Below are positions 25,247-36,000 of a stretch of DNA of 64,000 nucleotides, in pieces. Every line of letters begins with the position of its first letter. Position 1 is the stretch's first letter. Under the pieces are notes generated by a model. The model had not been told where the DNA came from. It ran no database searches and saw only the letters and a list, made by a program, of their open reading frames with translations. Source of the stretch: Adineta vaga (Eukaryota > Animalia > Rotifera); the NCBI GenBank assembly GCA_021613535.1, contig CP075496.1, positions 6,944,001 through 7,008,000 on the forward strand, in the 5' to 3' direction. A program made the translations under genes and the position numbers.

Positions 25247-25714
25247 TCCTCACATTATTTTTATATTTGAGATATGAAGTTTCTATTTATATGAGAATAT
25301 CTTTCCTTTTCTATCTTGGAATTTGAATAGTTTTGTTTTCGTGTCTTTTATGTTGTTTTAGATCAGTACAGGAAAACCCAATCTATTTTCTTGCTTTTCA
25401 TTTTCTTGTACACCGTGTTTCTATCATATGTGATTTTATCTATTTATCTTGATATTTGTTTTGGAAGATATAAAGACAACTAAATTTTGAAAGAAAGAAA
25501 TGCATAAATAACATTTAACATAATTATAAAAGCAAACTCATTGACCTTGATAATGTCACTGTCGTAAAGTAGGTCATGTCGAATTGTTTTTCACATAGCG
25601 TTGATTACGTTGCATCGTAATGCAAGTATAGATGAAAATTACAAAATCAAGAATCCTTTTCGAAAAACTTTGCTTGTGTTTTTATTCAAACAAAACAATA
25701 GATAACAAGTTCTC

Positions 25715-26529
25715 TTATTTCCGCGTTCGTTTCTTTTTCGATTCTGTTTGGATTCCACCATTTTTACCTAATTTTGCATGTGAACGTCGAGGTTTTGTTT
25801 TCGTATGTTTTCCTTTTTTCATCAAACCTGTTGCTTTCATATTCTGTAATACAGACATTTTCTTCGATAAAGGCGTTTTAATCCTGAAAATATATTCATA
25901 GATTAAAAGAAATTCTAAATCTTTTTTATTCGTACTTTGATTTCTTTGATAATGTAGGTTCATTATCTTGATCCTAAATGGAAAGAAAAACATGGTAATG
26001 ATAAATACGTATCCTAGATTATTATTTACTTTGTCGTCTATTTCATTATCATTAACTTGATTATGACCCATATATATTCCAGTATTTGAATTTAATTGAT
26101 CATCCATTTCTGCAATTTCAATCGTATGATCTTTTAATTCAATTGTTCGTTTTTTTGTATTATTTTCGACGGTATCAAGTAAACCTAATGCTTCATGTCT
26201 TTTTTTCATTTCATCTCGACGCTAAAAAAACATAAACAAATCGATTCGTATTATTTTGTGAATGAATCTTACTTTTTGTCGTAAAATTTTCAAGTCACTT
26301 TTTATTTCATCCTCCAGATCTTTTTGTGCTCGTTCACGACGTTCAAGTTTTCGTTTATGAAAACCTTTTAGATATTCTCTTAAATAAAAATAAACAATTG
26401 AAAATAATTTAAGAAAAAAATCTTTTACTTTCGAGCTTGTTCATCAAAAACAAGTTGCGTTTTAGTTTGACGATTCTTTTTTGATCGACGTTGAATAAGA
26501 AATGATGGAGTACTTTCATCAACATCCAT
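25715..26529 (-). CDS. NOL12: Nucleolar protein 12 / Rrp17 (Nop25 family)
   Basis: Spliced MDVDES...LVFDEQARKEYLKGFHKRKLERRERAQ carries the family signature FDxxxRxEYLxGFHKRK, followed by a Lys/Arg-rich C-terminus. Confidence 0.9.
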
Positions 26530-26689
26530 GATTATTTTTCTAGAATTCATTTCATATTTATGTAATAGTTAATAAAAAATGTTATCCACACAAAATAAAA
26601 TAATGAACTAATCGTACATTTTTGTTTATCACTTGTCATTTGAAAACGATTGATTATTTCAAAAGTCATCTAAGTCTAAGTTTTCATTG

Positions 26690-26725
26690 CCAATTTCTGA
26701 TTGGTCAGAACGATGTGACCAATCC
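26690..26725. promoter_or_regulatory. Clustered CCAAT boxes in the divergent NOL12/TPR promoter
   Basis: CCAAT 26690-26694, ATTGG 26700-26704 (ctgattggtc) and CCAAT 26719-26723 lie in the roughly 500-bp gap between head-to-head ATGs. Confidence 0.55.
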
Positions 26726-27028
26726 ATACGAATTGAAACTAAGTTCATATATTTTGATTTTTTAATTTCAGAATTCTCTTTTCTAGAATATTTTTCTATG
26801 TTTATGTATTCATTATTTCATCAGATAAAATCCATATTTTACCACAGTTCTAATCCATATCCATATGGGGAAGCAAACATATTCTTTTTTTTTCATTTAA
26901 CAGACAGGGACCGACCGTTGGCGCGTGTGTCCGTTAATTAGAAAAGAAAACGACTTTCTCTCGTTCTCTTCTATTCATTTTAATTTTAGATGTTCGTTGA
27001 TTGTCACTCGTAAAATCTAAATCAAACA

Positions 27029-30000
27029 ATGACAACGATAAATGATGAAATCGATTTCGATTTTTCTCAATTTGATGATACTTTAATTAGTGAGAATCAA
27101 AAACAGAATTTAATTGATTATATCAACCAACTGAAAAGTCAAAAACGTTCGATAAATGATGAATTTAATCAATTTAAATCATCAACAGGTAGTAGAAATT
27201 TAACCATCATCTCTTTTTTCTTATAAAATCATTCTTTTTTGCCAATTTATTATTTTTCCAACTAAGTCAATGAACGAACGAAGGAACTAAAATTCTTCTG
27301 CATATATTTTTTCTTCTCTTGTTTGTATTTTTTGCCATTTGTATTCTTCTCTCTCACTTTCTCATCAACTCTTCTCAAAAACAATAATGATCAATATCAA
27401 TAATTATGTAAGTAAGTATCATTGCATGTTGCTAACGCTTGATTTTTCCTACGTAAAAAGTATTGATTCTATTTTTGAAAATTTCATTTTCTTTTTCCTA
27501 AAGGTAATATCAAACGACGACGTACAAAACGACAAATTTCATTACCAATGACAAATCCAGATCACACAAGTAATTTACAAACGATGATTGAAACATTAAT
27601 CTATATCGTACATGAAATCAATCTTGAACAAGTTAAGTTAACAACGACAATAAATCAATTGATTAAACGAGTTAATCAAAATGAATTATATTTAAATCAA
27701 TTAAATATGAATATTGAAACATTATATGAACAATTTCATGTAAGATATGAAATATTTTACATTTCGAGAAAAAAACAAAAGCAAAGCTTTTTCTCATCTA
27801 GACGAAACAATATTCCGAATTTGAATTAGATCCAATTGAAATTCCAAAATCCTCATCATCACTGATCGAAGATAGTAGTCAACAACCAATTGATATGAGT
27901 GTAACAGGAAATTTTTCATTGAAAACTACAAATAAAACGAATGGAAAAGCTACATCGAATAAAGTATGTAAATCTATTTAAAAAAAAAAGTTGATACCAT
28001 TATTTAATTGTTCATATCCTTTAGGAATATATTGAACTTGGTGATCCATCCATTGGTCTATCATGTCTTGTTTTAAAACGTAAATATGATCAAGTTCGTC
28101 GTCGTACAGAACTCGCTTACATTCATGGTGAAAAACGTGCAATCGGTCGTTTATTAACATTTTTAATTCGACAATTTTTTTCCAATGATGAATTACGTAA
28201 TGCTTCATTAGATGGTCGCGTACGTAATACGCAAGCATTAGCTGAAGATCGAATGTGTATTATTGATAAACATTTACAAACGATCTTTGGAATTGATTAT
28301 AATTTATATCGTATAACAAAAGATTGTGCTGAACAAGTGAACGTTGTATGTCGACATGCAAGAAATCCGAAGAATTTTTTTGATAACAATAAGAAAAATG
28401 ATTCTCATTGTAAAATCGAAATGAATCATTTAATTATGGATCAAACTGATATTATTGAGGATAAAGAATTGGATGATTATGAATCATTTCAAGAACAATT
28501 GTTTATTCAAGCAAATGGTAAAATTAGTTTAAAAGAAGAAAACTTATGTCTTCTTTTTTCTTCTTATTTTTTAGGTTTACCGTACAAATTAGATTTATCC
28601 TCCGATACATAACATAGATCAACATGGATTTACTTGATATAGATACATCTTTTCATCTTTAATAATTCTTTCTATCTACAATCTACTTGTTTTGTCTTTC
28701 ATTTCTATTTCTATACACATGTGCGTGTCTGTGTGACTTGATTCTCAAAAATTAGATATTAACCTTGCTTGATTAGTCAGTCGTTCGTTCGTTCGTTCAT
28801 TTAGACATTTTCTTCTTTTTATTTTATGTTGAGCTTGTTTGATTATTTCATTTGATTTATTTAGAACAACGATTTCATGAATTAGCACGTGAATATGATA
28901 CTGTTCGTAGTGAAGTAGTGAAACAACGTGAAATTGAAAGTCAATTACGGAATGAAAATGAACAAATACGTTAGTTATCTTCTTTTATGTTCAGAAAATT
29001 TTATAGTAAATATTTAATTTTTCAATAGAAAAAGCATCGAGTAACATTGAACAGCAGTTGACAACTGTACGACAGAATGAACAACAGCTTAATTCAAAAC
29101 TAGTTTGTTGAAAACTAATTTTGTTTTTCAAGCTTTGTAAAAACATGTTTTTTTTCTCCTAGGAATCTATTTTAGAACAAGTTCGACAATTGTCAACTGA
29201 GCGAGAACAATTGAGAAATTCAATTAATGAAAAAGAAAACGAAAACTATGAATTACAAAGTAAGTTATTTTTTGAAAAATATCCAATAAATAATGATCAT
29301 AATGAAACATCGATATTGCTCTTTCGTTTTGTAGAACAACGTGAAGCCTTAGAAGAAGAAAATCGTCAAGTACATAATACAAATCATGCTACAATTGAAC
29401 GTTTACAAGTATTGGAAACGACGACTTCTCAACTTCATGTAAATCAATGGAATAAAAACTTTATTTTAATACATGAAGAAATTTCTTTTATTCTATTTAG
29501 AGTTTGGAACTGTTATGGAATAAAGAACGTCAATTGTTTACTGATCAATTACAAACATTAGAACATTCATTAATTGAAAGCAAAAAATTAGCTATCGATC
29601 AACAAACTCAAATCATGCAAATGACTGTTCAATTAGAATCAACCGAAGGACAATCTCAAGCACAAGTTTGTCTTTTTCTTACTTCTAAAAAGAAAACAAT
29701 ACATTTGATGTATATCTTATTTTATCAATATAGAAACGTTCATTGGACATAGGTCTTGATGAAAAGAATGAAGCAATACTTAATCTCGATCGACAATTAC
29801 GAGAAAAAACACAACGAATTGAACAGGTAAGCTAAAATACTTCATCCAATGACAAAGATGATCTATTATTTGTAAAATTTGTTCAAGTTTTATTAAGAAT
29901 CGTCGCACATATATTTTTTATTTAGCTTCAAACCGATCTCCAACGAACAGTCCGTCAGATGGAAAATCAACAAATTACATCAAATAAAACCATACAATCG

Positions 30001-33000
30001 CTCAAAGTTTGTTACAAGATTATCCGATTAAAAAAAGAAAATAAAAATAAAAATTGATTTTTTTCTCAATAGACACAAATTGACGAATTAGCAAAGAAGA
30101 ATTCCATCATGAATGAAAAATATGATGAACAAAGTCAATCGTTAGTGAAAATTACTTCAGGTTAGTTTTTTTTTTGATTTAGTTAAAAAAATATTAGTAT
30201 GAATATTAATATAGAACGTGATGTGATCAAAGGAGAAATGAAAACGCTGAATGAAATGTTCGAAAAACAGTCAACGGAAAATGGTAAGTAATATATATGT
30301 CTTAACCACTGATTCCAGTTGAAGACATAGATGTTGTTCCGGTGTATGCGCGTGTTACAGGACCTGCTCCAGGTTGAAATGGACTGAATGACGAAACTGA
30401 AAAAGAATAATTGAAATTGAAATAATCTCATTTATTTTATATTTGAGAACTCACGAATTGATGAAACGAAAGAGATGCGACTGAATCGTTGTTGTGATAT
30501 GCTACCGATACTACTACCATCTCTAAATATTTCAACATTATTGAATACGAATGCAGATGGAGAAATATTGTAAAGAATTTGTTGAAGAGTAGCACCAGCT
30601 TTTGTTTGACAAAAATAGGGACATGTATTATCAAATGTGAAGATCATTTTAATGTCGTAAATAATTGTACTTAATTGACGAACATCTCTGTCCAGAGCCC
30701 TGAAAAAGAATTCATTTTCATTCAGTTATTTCCAACAACTGTCTACTGTCACTTACATGCGTTTCTTTTTACTATCAGCTCTATTTGCGATACCAACACT
30801 AAGGATAGTCACATCCTTCACTGATGGAGAATTTAAATATTGACGAATCTAAATTAGAAATTCAAATGAGCTTATTTAACACCAAGAGTTAGACGATCGA
30901 GTGGTAAGATGGAAGAATAAAATGTGAATATTTCTAAGTAGATATAGTGTTGAAAAGACTTACAATTTGACGAACTTGTTCACGGCCTGATGATCCAAAT
31001 TCACCACCAATATAGTTATTTAAATCAACTGATGATTGTCGCTTACGACCCACAGCAGTACCAGATTCAGCTTGCATCTGAGCTATCATACTTGTGTAGT
31101 TAGCTGAATGTATGAAGAAGAAAAAATCACATTGAATCTTCAAGAGAAATTATTAAGAAATGATTTACTTCGACTTAAGCCATCTGCTTTACTGGGCAAA
31201 TAAGTTGGTATAAGTGCCATAACAATAGTTAGAGCAATTGTGAACAAAATCAAACCTAAACAGCAACATCCCATAAGATATGGAAGTGAAGGATTGGTTG
31301 CGAGGTTTGCTCTACAGGAGGATATAGAGAGAAAGAGAGTAAGGAAAACATAATTCATCGATTGAATATTACCGTTTGTCTCGTGCACTATCATTTTCAG
31401 CTTCCATTTTGAATTTCAAACTGAACTATTGTCGTCCACTTACAATATTTCAGGCCCTACTGTGCTCTGAATTGCTTTGATATTGATTGAGTGTCGAAAA
31501 AACGGAAAACTAATTCTTTTATATAGAGAAGAATTTTTTGTGCTAACAAGCATAGCATTTTCATGAGAGACTCTATCGAAAAATGTCTCTTTCCCAAGCA
31601 CACCCTGCTAGTTGTTTACTCATATCGGAAAATTAAAATTCTCATTTTGCACATAGGCTAGTATCGATCACACAGTTATTTTCTTTTATGCTAATTTTTT
31701 GCTCCAACAAGTGTTTACTAAAGGAAAGTAGGCTCGTTCAAGGTGTATCTATGACTATTTTTTTATCATGGTCCATTAATAAATGTTAGCATTTCATTAA
31801 GAAATATTTTTCTCTTTTCATATGGACGTTTTCGATTAAAAGAAGAGAAGACAACAGTTGCATGAAATGAAGTGCCTATTTGATATCAATCATTCGATCT
31901 AAAATTATATTATGTCAATGTACGTATATAATAGACGTCATTCTAACAAATATTTAGTTTTATGCTTGCTGAAGTCATGAATGTTTATAGGACTTCGATC
32001 AGGTTTCGTTTCTTTTTTGACAAATTATATAAGGGAAACTTACCTTTCATTTTCACAATGAATCAAAGTTGATACCTAGGTACTCATGATTCGTTATTTT
32101 CATTATTTGAAATTGAATTTTAAATGAGTAATTGTTCGCCTTTCATATGCGATAGTCTCCACAATAGTTAAGTCTAAAATGAAGAAACTAGATGCGCATG
32201 GTAGAAATAAATTGTACGATATTTCAAAGTTTATCAAATACTTTTCTAAGGTGTCAGAAGACGAAAGGAAATACTAATGGGTTCATTTTTATTGCTAGCA
32301 GGTCGATATTTAACATCGCTTCATGATTAAATTGCAGTCATTTTATTAAAAAGACTCTACAGATGGACAACATTTGTGTCACTAGTAGATATCTTTTAGT
32401 TTTATATTTTGATTTTATTGAATGATTAACGTAGATACAAATGGAGGATGTGTTCAAATCGAAATAGTTTTATTTTGTTATTGAAAACATTTCATTTTCT
32501 ATTTGAGCAATAACAAATTGAAGGGCATGCATGTTTGTCATTGATGAGATGGACACTCTATTTCTAGAAAATTAATTGATATAATTACCATGAGCAATTA
32601 ATGAAAGAATCATGACTTTTTAAAACAAACGATGAAGACGTAGTTATAAAATCTAAACGTATTGTCAATAATAAAAATGTAAAGACAAGCTTGATCATTA
32701 TGATAAGTCTTTCAATTAATTATTTTCGTAAAATCATCAGTGTAGTATTCATCTGAATGAGATGACTAGTACTATTCACATATATTTGTATTTTAAATTT
32801 CAAGGCTAAATATTTGATTTGTTGTTCCATAAGTATATGAACTTGTTCCATCATGCACACAGATGCCTCATAGAATTGTGGTTATTGTTCGCGACTTGAC
32901 TATTATATCTATAGGAATAAAACATAAAAATGTTTTCCTATATCTATCTAAAAGAAATGAATTCAAGCAACAACATAAATCTCATTTATTTGTTTAGAAC

Positions 33001-36000
33001 AAACGATTCGTCGATTACAAGATGAACTGGATAATACTACACAATTACTTGAATCAATTCGTAGTAAAGGTAAGCTATAATTCTATTTCATTATTTTTTT
33101 CTATTTATAGTTCATAGGTGCTGATTTGACTCAATTGACAAATTTTCTTGATGGTACACTCAATCATATTCGTTCAACTGATTCATCAACACCAACCTCT
33201 GCATCGACACCAACCGGAACGACGGTATTAACATTTAGACAAAAAAGAAACGACATCATTCACTTTTGTTTTCTTCTCTAACTAGAATTGTCCAGAATGT
33301 CGTCAACTAAAGAGTGCACTTGTACTAGAATTAACTGGTAAAGAACGTTTTCGATTTGGCTATGAACAACTTTCATCGGTATGTATAAAGAAAAATGAAA
33401 AAGATCAATAAAAAAAACTAAAACATGATTTGTTGATGTAGATGGTCAAAGAAGCAGCACCAATTCTTCGACGACAAAAACAAGATTATGAAGCGTCCTT
33501 CGAAGTTATTGCTAAATTAACAAGTGAATTAAATGAAGCTCGAAAAGTAAAGCACATGAGTTTTATTGAGAAGTTAACTGTTCATTTCTGTTTATTGTCT
33601 AGGAATTGTCTGAATTGCAACATTTATCTGGAGATAGTATCGAAAATTATCGATATATTCAACGAGAAAATCAATTTTTAGTCAATGATAACAAATCTTT
33701 AGCTACCAAGGTAGATATTTTATAAGAATAAAAAAGAATTAACGTATTCCTGGTCTCTAGATTCAAGTTCTTCTGTCTGAAATCGAAGAATTACGTACAG
33801 GTAAACGTTTACCAGAACGTGAATCATCATCTGAATATGATCCAAATCAACAAGTACCATTAACATTTCGGTAACTATATGACTTTTAATCTTCTTTATA
33901 TATCAAAATACGAATTTTTTTCTTTTTGTAAAAAATAGAAACGTCGTTGAACTTCAACATGTTAATCAAAAATTAGATAGATTAGTACGTGAAATGCGTG
34001 CACAAAGTAATACAGATGATGAAGATTTGCATCGAACAAGATTTGATGAACTTAAAAAAGATCATCAACAACAACAAGAAAAATTAAAAGAAACAAGAAA
34101 TCAATTGGATGGTTTAGAAACACAAGTTTGTTAAATTTTAAGTAGAAAGAAAAAATATATGCATGATTTCTCGTTCATTTTAGATGGCATCACTTATACA
34201 AGAACGAGATTTTCTTCGTTTATTAGTGTCACGTTCATCATCATCACAATTGGTAACGAATGATACTTATTCTCATACAGAATTTCATGAATAAATATCT
34301 TTCTTTTAGACTTCATCTTCCAATCCATCTGTAGATACTCATCAATTAGAAAACTTTCGTGATCAAGCCAATCGTTTACAAGAAAAAATTGAAATTCTGA
34401 CGAAAAAAAATTCCCAATTAACCACTGAAAAAGACGATCTTATGAGGTAAATTATTCACATCTATCTTTCTTTTATTCTTAAGATATGATTTTCTTAGGA
34501 CATCAAATGAAAAAGTTCGTTCAATTCAATATGAACTTTTAACAGCACGTACAGAAGTTGAACAAATGACTGAAAAAGTATGATTAATTCTTTTTTCGTA
34601 TAGAAAAGAAATTTCGATAATATTTTGCTAGTTGAATTTAATTCACGATGAACAAGCAACAAATCGATTAACAATTGCTTCACTTCGAACAGAAATTAAT
34701 GGTTGGCAAGAACGACATAATATGTTAGTACAAATTCGAAATAAACAAGAACAACAATATTTCAATGTTTTATCTGTATGTTGAAATTTTCCTTATAAAA
34801 CTCAAGAAATATCTTCGAATTCTATTTTAGGAATTGCGTCAATTAAAGGATGAAAAAGCTTCATTAGACTGTCGTTTAAATACTTTAGGAAATGAACGTA
34901 AATTTGATTCTATTAAATGTGAACAATTGGAAAATGAATGTATGTTATTAAAAAGTGAAATCAATAAAAATGATCAAATTCAACCAGTTATTGAAAAACT
35001 TCAGGTACAACCTCAATGATAAACAAAACGTTTCTCATCGATGATGTTTTGTTTTTAGATTTTAGCAGAATTTACTAAAGAAAAAACGAAAGCAATGTTC
35101 GAAGCAAAATTAAATGATTTAACTGCACAAAATGAAGAACTCCGTCAACGAATTGAGCAGAATGAACGTGAAAAAGAATTAACAGAACGTACATATCAAT
35201 CACGTTTAGATGAATTTGTACAAAATCTTCAACAAGAAAAAACAAATAATTCAGAAATGCGTACAAAATTTCTTGGCGAAAAGGAAAAAACAGAACAATT
35301 ACAACGACAAGTACAATTTCCTTACCTTTTTCTATTTGATTTTCGTCGACTTATTCATTTTTAGTTACATGAAATTGAATTGAAAGCAAATGCAAATACA
35401 AATCCAAAGACTGGTATGATAAAGAACAATCAATTGACAAAAGAAAACTTGTTTGTTTCTATTTCTCTCTCTATAGATTTTGAACAACAACTAGGAGATT
35501 ATGAAAAAGAAATCAAATTGCTTCGAGTTAAACTTGATGCAGCTAATAATGAATTAGAATGTAGGATAATAACTTGAAAAAAAAAGAGAAACAATTTAGA
35601 TATATTCGAATGTTGATTTATTTAGTGAAACAAACAGTCATTCAATCAAATATTGATAATACGAATCAATTAAATGTTAATGAACAAAAAGCCACTGAAG
35701 AACTTGAGAAAATCAAACAAGTAAAGTTTGATTAAACTTCTTCTATTTAGTTAACTTGGCTTTTACTTTAGGAATATACACAAAAATCGTATGATTACGA
35801 AAATGAAATCGAAAGACTTAAACAAGGTGAGAAAAGTCTGCTGTTCAGTTAGATATTTATAGGTAAATGAAAATCTTTTCAGAAATTCTAAATCATCAAT
35901 CAATTATTAATCAAAATGAAGAAAATCTACGTTCGTTAAATGATCATCTTCAAGCAATTAATGATCAACATCAAATCGAAGTATAAAACATATTTTTCTT

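Follow-up and report, generated by a model that had tools for sequence, protein, structure and literature searches.

A same-strand nested gene with a predicted BEN fold in a TPR-like gene of bdelloid rotifers is bracketed by conserved complementary boxes

Organization of the locus

The window (the whole stretch of DNA that was analysed, 64 kb with about 30% G+C and introns of 50-115 nt, from an assembly of 100.8 Mb in six contigs) carries on its plus strand a host gene, here called TPR-like, whose open coiled-coil exons run from 27029 to about 39700, and a second gene that lies on the same strand between the first two exons of this host. Host exon 1 (27029..27188) begins with the ATG at 27029 and comprises 160 nt, i.e. 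53 codons and 1 nt, such that it ends in phase 1 at ACAG/GT, and host exon 2 (28865..28969) is delimited by the joints 27188>28865 and 28969>29029 in RNA contigs. RNA contigs of the host extend upstream to 26987 or beyond. Immediately before the host start codon, a conserved block (26985-27008) includes an ATG at 26990 with which a seven-codon ORF begins.

The nested gene begins with a private first exon (27314..27411, the 5' end being a minimum), in which the ATG at 27387 is followed by overlapping tandem donors at 27408 (phase 0) and 27412 (phase 1). The acceptor AG at 27502-27503 precedes nested exon 2 (27504..27739), which opens with GT AAT ATC AAA CGA in phase 1, is present in RNA contigs and encodes a basic KRRRTKR motif followed by a coiled coil. 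Nested exon 3 (27802..27963), a poorly conserved linker, is represented by a contig of run X3 (record 12) and by loose ends in run X2, and nested exon 4 (28025..28517), defined by RNA contigs, a profile and a predicted structure, encodes the putative BEN fold (28025-28399). Nested exon 5 (28575..28808) holds the stop codon (28610-28612) and a 3' UTR that extends to at least 28808. Just 5' of the host exon 2 acceptor lies a conserved G/U-rich element (28829..28845, plus strand), found in the window and in eight relatives, which may be a branch region or a downstream element for polyadenylation of the nested transcript. The coordinates, phases and splice sites on which the original prediction was built all proved correct when checked against the sequence, as did its observation that the nested gene is phase-compatible with host exon 1.

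Identity of the host gene and of the nested protein

The host gene had been named as the gene for the nuclear-basket protein TPR, an identification that we find weakly supported and hence reduce to "TPR-like". Among many exons searched against Pfam, a single one of the host (33934-34131) matched the last 26 of the 110 positions of PF25785 (Nucleoprotein TPR-like; E=0.005, 17.5 bits against a cut-off of 27), a partial and sub-threshold match, while the two host exons before it gave no match to this model. The other TPR models, PF07926 (TPR_MLP1_2) and PF25481 (Nucleoprot-TPR), had no match anywhere in the genome in a six-frame, exon-by-exon search in which introns would split both domains. Likewise, a profile of host exon 1 retrieved no TPR chain from the PDB, and an atlas look-up of one host exon returned generic coiled coils only. 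Several host exons presumably resemble human TPR. A second gene (C2:7229451-7229756; L020, 7515-8084) scored 32.3 bits with PF25785, above the Pfam cut-off in the genome search, and shows no detectable sequence similarity to the host gene of the window. Either of them may be the TPR orthologue, the gene on C2 being the better match to PF25785.

The assignment of the nested protein to the BEN-domain factors fared better, if not by the route envisaged. Searched with Pfam PF10523 (BEN), the segment 28025-28525 stayed below threshold (E=0.13, 13.0 bits versus a gathering cut-off of 23.2), and two orthologues scored 18.9 and 16.2 bits (E=0.0018 and 0.013) over the same profile range (5-73 of 76). 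However, when a profile of the family (A1) was run against the PDB, the five best matches were all BEN domains of BEND3 (E=7.6e-4), and a deeper family profile (A3) again placed BEND3 first (E=0.016). An AlphaFold model built with a 32-sequence alignment reached a pLDDT of 90.6 and a pTM of 0.83 (a single-sequence fold of nested exon 4 gave a pLDDT of only 33.6), and Foldseek ranks 1 to 12 were all BEN domains (BEND3, BANP, NACC1 and Insensitive), with probabilities of 0.97-1.00, TM-scores of 0.51-0.65 and a best E-value of 5.8e-3. On the strength of the family profile and the predicted structure, we accept the nested protein as a probable divergent BEN fold that is preceded by a basic motif and a predicted coiled coil. 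It resembles Insensitive, Elba/Bsg25A, BEND3, BANP and NACC1 in that a C-terminal BEN fold would follow a predicted coiled coil, and it differs from them in its low identity (8-20%), in its sub-threshold Pfam score and in belonging to a family that seems confined to bdelloids.

Protein searches were conducted exon by exon. An exhaustive HMMER search yielded 13 relatives of the nested protein and a profile search 57, the named ones among the latter all coming from the bdelloids Rotaria and Didymodactylos, which suggests a family restricted to bdelloid rotifers. Paralogues, among them P0010 and the C1 copy, are built alike and possess start codons of their own; the C1 copy (L002), a stand-alone gene with 30% identity, is the only paralogue of the nested gene in the genome. 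We found no paper in the literature that combines bdelloids and the BEN domain.

Transcripts of the host and nested genes

Transcripts were taken from the Logan contigs of four runs from two studies, from which rare isoforms drop out; the four runs were taken as RNA because GT..AG joints are present. Fifteen of the 21 joints are listed as such, and the other six were matched by expected ones (four nested, two host). The host joint, aligned at 27186>28863, becomes 27188>28865 with GT..AG borders after a shift of +2, and it is carried by a 1146-nt contig in X1 (depth 39.6), a 1145-nt contig in X2 (depth 24.3) and a loose end in X3. Making the host mRNA does require, as had been deduced, that a same-strand spliced gene and its 3' end be skipped.

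Each of the four runs has contigs in which nested exons are joined, at a nested depth of 3-8, and contigs together with loose ends support the joints 27739>27802, 27963>28025 and 28517>28575 (in record 16 of X5, 28025-28516 is joined to 28574-28808). The upstream end emerged from X1, in which a contig of 399 nt (record 3) consists of 98 nt of upstream sequence, 27504-27739 and 65 nt of the next exon. The total depth at 27359 and at 27377 equals the depth of this contig, and the bin means of 4.31 and 3.73 fit 27314-27411 joined to 27504 exactly, while the donor at 27408 does not fit. This depth arithmetic indicates that the in-frame donor at 27412 is used in the species of the window, at a junction that is deduced and not among the listed joints. 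Nested transcripts hence begin with the private exon (at least 27314-27411) spliced to 27504, pass through three more introns and end shortly before host exon 2. In X5, moreover, 27825-28808 is covered at a depth of 8 and host exons 1-6 at 0, showing that nested RNA can occur in the absence of host RNA.

In the window species the nested gene is therefore made as an mRNA of its own, with a private first exon and an in-frame AUG at 27387. The original prediction had offered this exon as an alternative start of 25 nt (27387-27411); its AUG and donor stand, while the exon is longer (at least 27314-27411) and is the sole start seen. The proposal that host exon 1 is shared, giving rise to either the host protein or a TPR-BEN chimera, was borne out in one half only, as the host splice 27188>28865 is present but the junction 27188>27504 is missing from the contigs, joints and loose ends of all four runs. 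Because contigs lose rare forms and nested depth is only 3-8, this absence excludes the chimera as a major isoform and nothing rarer. By the reckoning of the prediction itself, a nested transcript that starts with a private exon, as in these runs, is simply a nested gene here.

Conservation of the layout in bdelloids

Fifteen further loci with the nested gene were retrieved from metagenome, Logan and NCBI assemblies and represent 12 distinct ones (L012, L013 and L018 match L011). The order host exon 1, nested gene, host exon 2, all on one strand, is kept in 12 of 12 as far as the contigs reach, and Hexokinase and Nop25 lie upstream, as in the window. Host exon 1 has 66-88% protein identity to that of the window across these loci, no better than host exons 2-6, and it ends with ACAG/GT in every locus, as nested exon 2 everywhere opens in phase 1. 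Judged from these sequences, the sense-nested layout is old and conserved. The orthologous loci anticipated by the original prediction thus exist in 12 distinct versions, while a homeologous one was not found, two host exons matching only themselves in the genome. In one relative (L008, 1521-2311), nested introns two and three are lost, with exons 2-4 forming one open frame (P0001, 240 aa) and the private and last introns retained.

The start codon of the nested gene

Nested exon 2 bears a coding signature from its first codon. Between the acceptor and the only conserved Met, 11 sequences contain no in-frame stop, whereas the other frames carry stops; the length of this stretch differs between sequences by multiples of three, and in the KRRR and KR blocks 120 of 120 pairwise codon differences are synonymous and none is non-synonymous. 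On the basis that exon 2 is coding from its first codon, an upstream exon bearing an AUG is needed. Although the private donor is conserved, most relatives have either no AUG before it or one in the wrong frame: with this donor the AUG falls in phase 0 in L009, L010, L014, L016 and L022 and in phase 2 in L005, L006, L017 and the L011 group, it is absent from L008, and it is in phase 1 but 79 nt away in L007. The window attains phase 1 via the second donor 4 nt downstream, which the relatives do not have. To judge from sequence, some lineages could regain the frame through weak GT sites at a distance of 4 nt. This way out is closed to L006, L017 and the L011 group, where an in-frame start results neither from the conserved donor nor from a GT placed 4 nt before or after it. 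In L009, L010, L016 and L022, splicing of the private exon with its phase-0 AUG to exon 2 would give a six-codon uORF with its stop within the first nine bases of exon 2, a mini-uORF that is possibly conserved.

The only start that works in every locus is host exon 1, which brings back the chimera. Its junction, 27188>27504, would string together 53 TPR-like residues, a Gly, KRRRTKR, the coiled coil and the BEN fold, and such a protein might be real and functional, existing beside the private form in the window species and as the main form in other bdelloids, a reading that we put forward tentatively. It would provide the upstream AUG that the coding 5' part of exon 2 requires and that most private exons fail to supply in frame, even though weak donors 4 nt away could restore the frame in several lineages other than those named above. 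The donor of host exon 1 and the acceptor of nested exon 2 are in the same phase in every locus, yet this may be a one-in-three coincidence that was inherited once. In three NCBI models, P0070 and P0099 (Rotaria sp. Silwood2) and P0100 (Rotaria sp. Silwood1), nested exons 2-3 follow directly on host exon 1, but these models are automatic predictions and not transcripts, and a predictor that has to supply an ATG would choose exon 1. Against the chimera also speak the four runs from which its junction is absent and the conservation of host exon 1, which does not exceed that of its neighbours. We regard exon sharing, argued from the reading frames of these loci, as a live possibility in the clade that falls well short of an even chance. 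The series of species in which the private start codon is in frame, out of frame or missing makes it directly testable by RT-PCR.

There is a precedent in the cholinergic locus, where a same-strand gene (VAChT) likewise sits in the first intron of its host (ChAT); exon 1 is joined there either to the nested VAChT or to host exon 2, and this sharing was confirmed by RT-PCR (PMC7524744). The two loci differ in that the VAChT ORF lies wholly in an exon of its own, whereas the shared exon here would be coding and donate 53 residues, and in that sharing is absent from the RNA contigs of our locus, where the nested gene has its own first exon and four introns.

Bdelloids are known to trans-splice, and a spliced leader might alternatively release the nested gene from transcripts begun at the host promoter. 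We consider this very improbable. None of the runs lists a loose end at 27504 or 27314, although loose ends down to 13 nt in length appear elsewhere, 27314 is not preceded by an AG acceptor, and a leader would not supply the missing AUG, since the spliced leader is not known to contain one.

Complementary boxes bracketing the nested gene

Two boxes on the plus strand form an inverted repeat of 19 nt with 95% complementarity that brackets the nested gene: box A (27269..27287) lies 80 nt after the exon 1 donor, and box A' (28783..28801) falls within the nested 3' UTR, 63 nt upstream of the acceptor of host exon 2. Their exact core motif occurs at only these two places in the 64-kb window. A box pair is present in nine of the nine sequences that reach both ends; box A follows the exon 1 donor by 51-92 nt, box A' precedes host exon 2 by 54-76 nt, and the stems measure 14-26 bp. 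The intron around the boxes is otherwise poorly conserved. Stems of 14-17 bp with G-U pairs arise by chance in such A+T-rich DNA, so the argument rests on conservation and covariation, not on stem length. First, lineage-specific variants are common to A and the reverse complement of A'. Second, duplexes of A with its own A' have a mean of -34.6 kcal/mol compared to -27.0 kcal/mol for cross-species pairs, a value reached by 0 of 20000 permutations. Third, within the A+T-rich and the G+C-richer group taken separately, the true matching of A to A' is the best of 720 and of 6 permutations, respectively. Conserved complementary boxes with covariation thus bracket the nested gene. Long duplex folds of the whole flanks were uninformative, and L021, another same-strand nested locus of this genome, contains only short A+T-rich chance pairs and comes without orthologues by which to judge them.

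It might be objected that the nested gene is a plain one and that the boxes act as DNA, either as inverted sites of a single factor that delimit the nested unit or as remnants of the terminal inverted repeats of an element with which the BEN gene arrived, their likeness maintained by gene conversion. The core motif may indeed have a life of its own, being found 575 times in the 100.8 Mb genome versus 104 times for a reversed control (about 5.5-fold), often in tandem, and BEN domains are sequence-specific DNA binders, going by the titles of solved complexes among the Foldseek matches. Yet decaying repeat ends would lose their complementarity across lineages whose proteins are 66-88% identical, the lineage variants change both arms together, which a binding site does not predict, and the fixed distance to two host splice sites fits a role in RNA. 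We therefore think it unlikely that the boxes function only as DNA, while noting that covariation of A and A' could stem from gene conversion between two copies of a DNA element.

A model for the processing of host and nested transcripts

The host of a same-strand nested gene must ignore good acceptors and a poly(A) site, and how it does so is rarely known. The reading that we favour, with a probability of roughly 55%, is that an old sense-nested BEN gene with its own mRNA is looped out of the host pre-mRNA by a bridge between boxes A and A', the chimera being at most a minor isoform here. As the observed 5' end of the nested contigs falls downstream of box A, only RNA begun at the host promoter would carry it. 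In such RNA, box A could pair with A' and loop out the nested exons along with their 3'-end signals, and this pairing would bring the exon 1 donor beside the exon 2 acceptor and favour the splice 27188>28865. RNA begun at the private exon, conversely, would have no box A, and its cleavage and polyadenylation would follow. Where relatives have no private AUG in frame, the chimera may still be the main start, although the box pair, if it works as proposed, would act against it.

Looped-out exons and a choice between splicing and polyadenylation that is controlled by structure have been described for human conserved complementary regions and Drosophila Nmnat (PMC8052449). The likeness is that two conserved complementary boxes, separated by about 1.2-2.4 kb, flank exons and a 3' end which the host transcript has to pass over (PMC8052449). 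In its candidate role, however, our pair would loop out a whole independent gene and not an alternative exon, and its upstream box lies between two candidate transcription starts, so that promoter choice could decide whether the duplex forms. The locus offers a compact, conserved candidate answer to the processing problem of same-strand nested genes, and we view the box pair as its most interesting and most testable result.

One contig sits uneasily with the bridge. X3 contains a 319-nt contig (depth 6.78) that is unspliced over 27040-27358 and carries three non-reference bases, at 27215, 27222 and 27271, the last one inside box A. It may represent host pre-mRNA of the other allele, an allele-specific failure of splicing or a longer first exon. 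Being unspliced across this interval, it indicates that box A can lie on RNA that reaches the private exon, which counts against the bridge.

The bridge and exon sharing could also be parts of a single switch, in which one coding first exon gives rise to two unrelated nuclear proteins. If the duplex forms, TPR-like mRNA would result; if it fails or forms late, a TPR(1-53)-BEN protein would be made, the only AUG-initiated full-length form in most bdelloids, from which the window species would recently have escaped via a few inserted bases (the second donor 4 nt downstream, which puts the private AUG in frame). We regard this combined scheme as doubtful.

Neighbouring genes

Upstream, a minus-strand gene for Nop25 (nucleolar protein 12; 25654-26560, E=1.2e-7 for the Nop25 match) is divergent from the host gene. 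No RNA coverage is seen over 26585-26978, leaving about 400-450 nt untranscribed between the two genes. The promoter region that they share contains, upstream of host exon 1, a block of about 39 nt (26907..26945) that is almost invariant in four aligned loci and is also visible in L008, L009 and L022.

Downstream, a highly expressed minus-strand gene (29878-31410), which has five introns of the CT..AC form and whose poly(A) tail is at 29878, extends into the host intron 30284-32997. It encodes a small membrane-like protein with no Pfam match. Its last exon (29878-30396) is antisense to three host exons, and alternative acceptors 1 nt apart are also present (30848>30964 or 30965).
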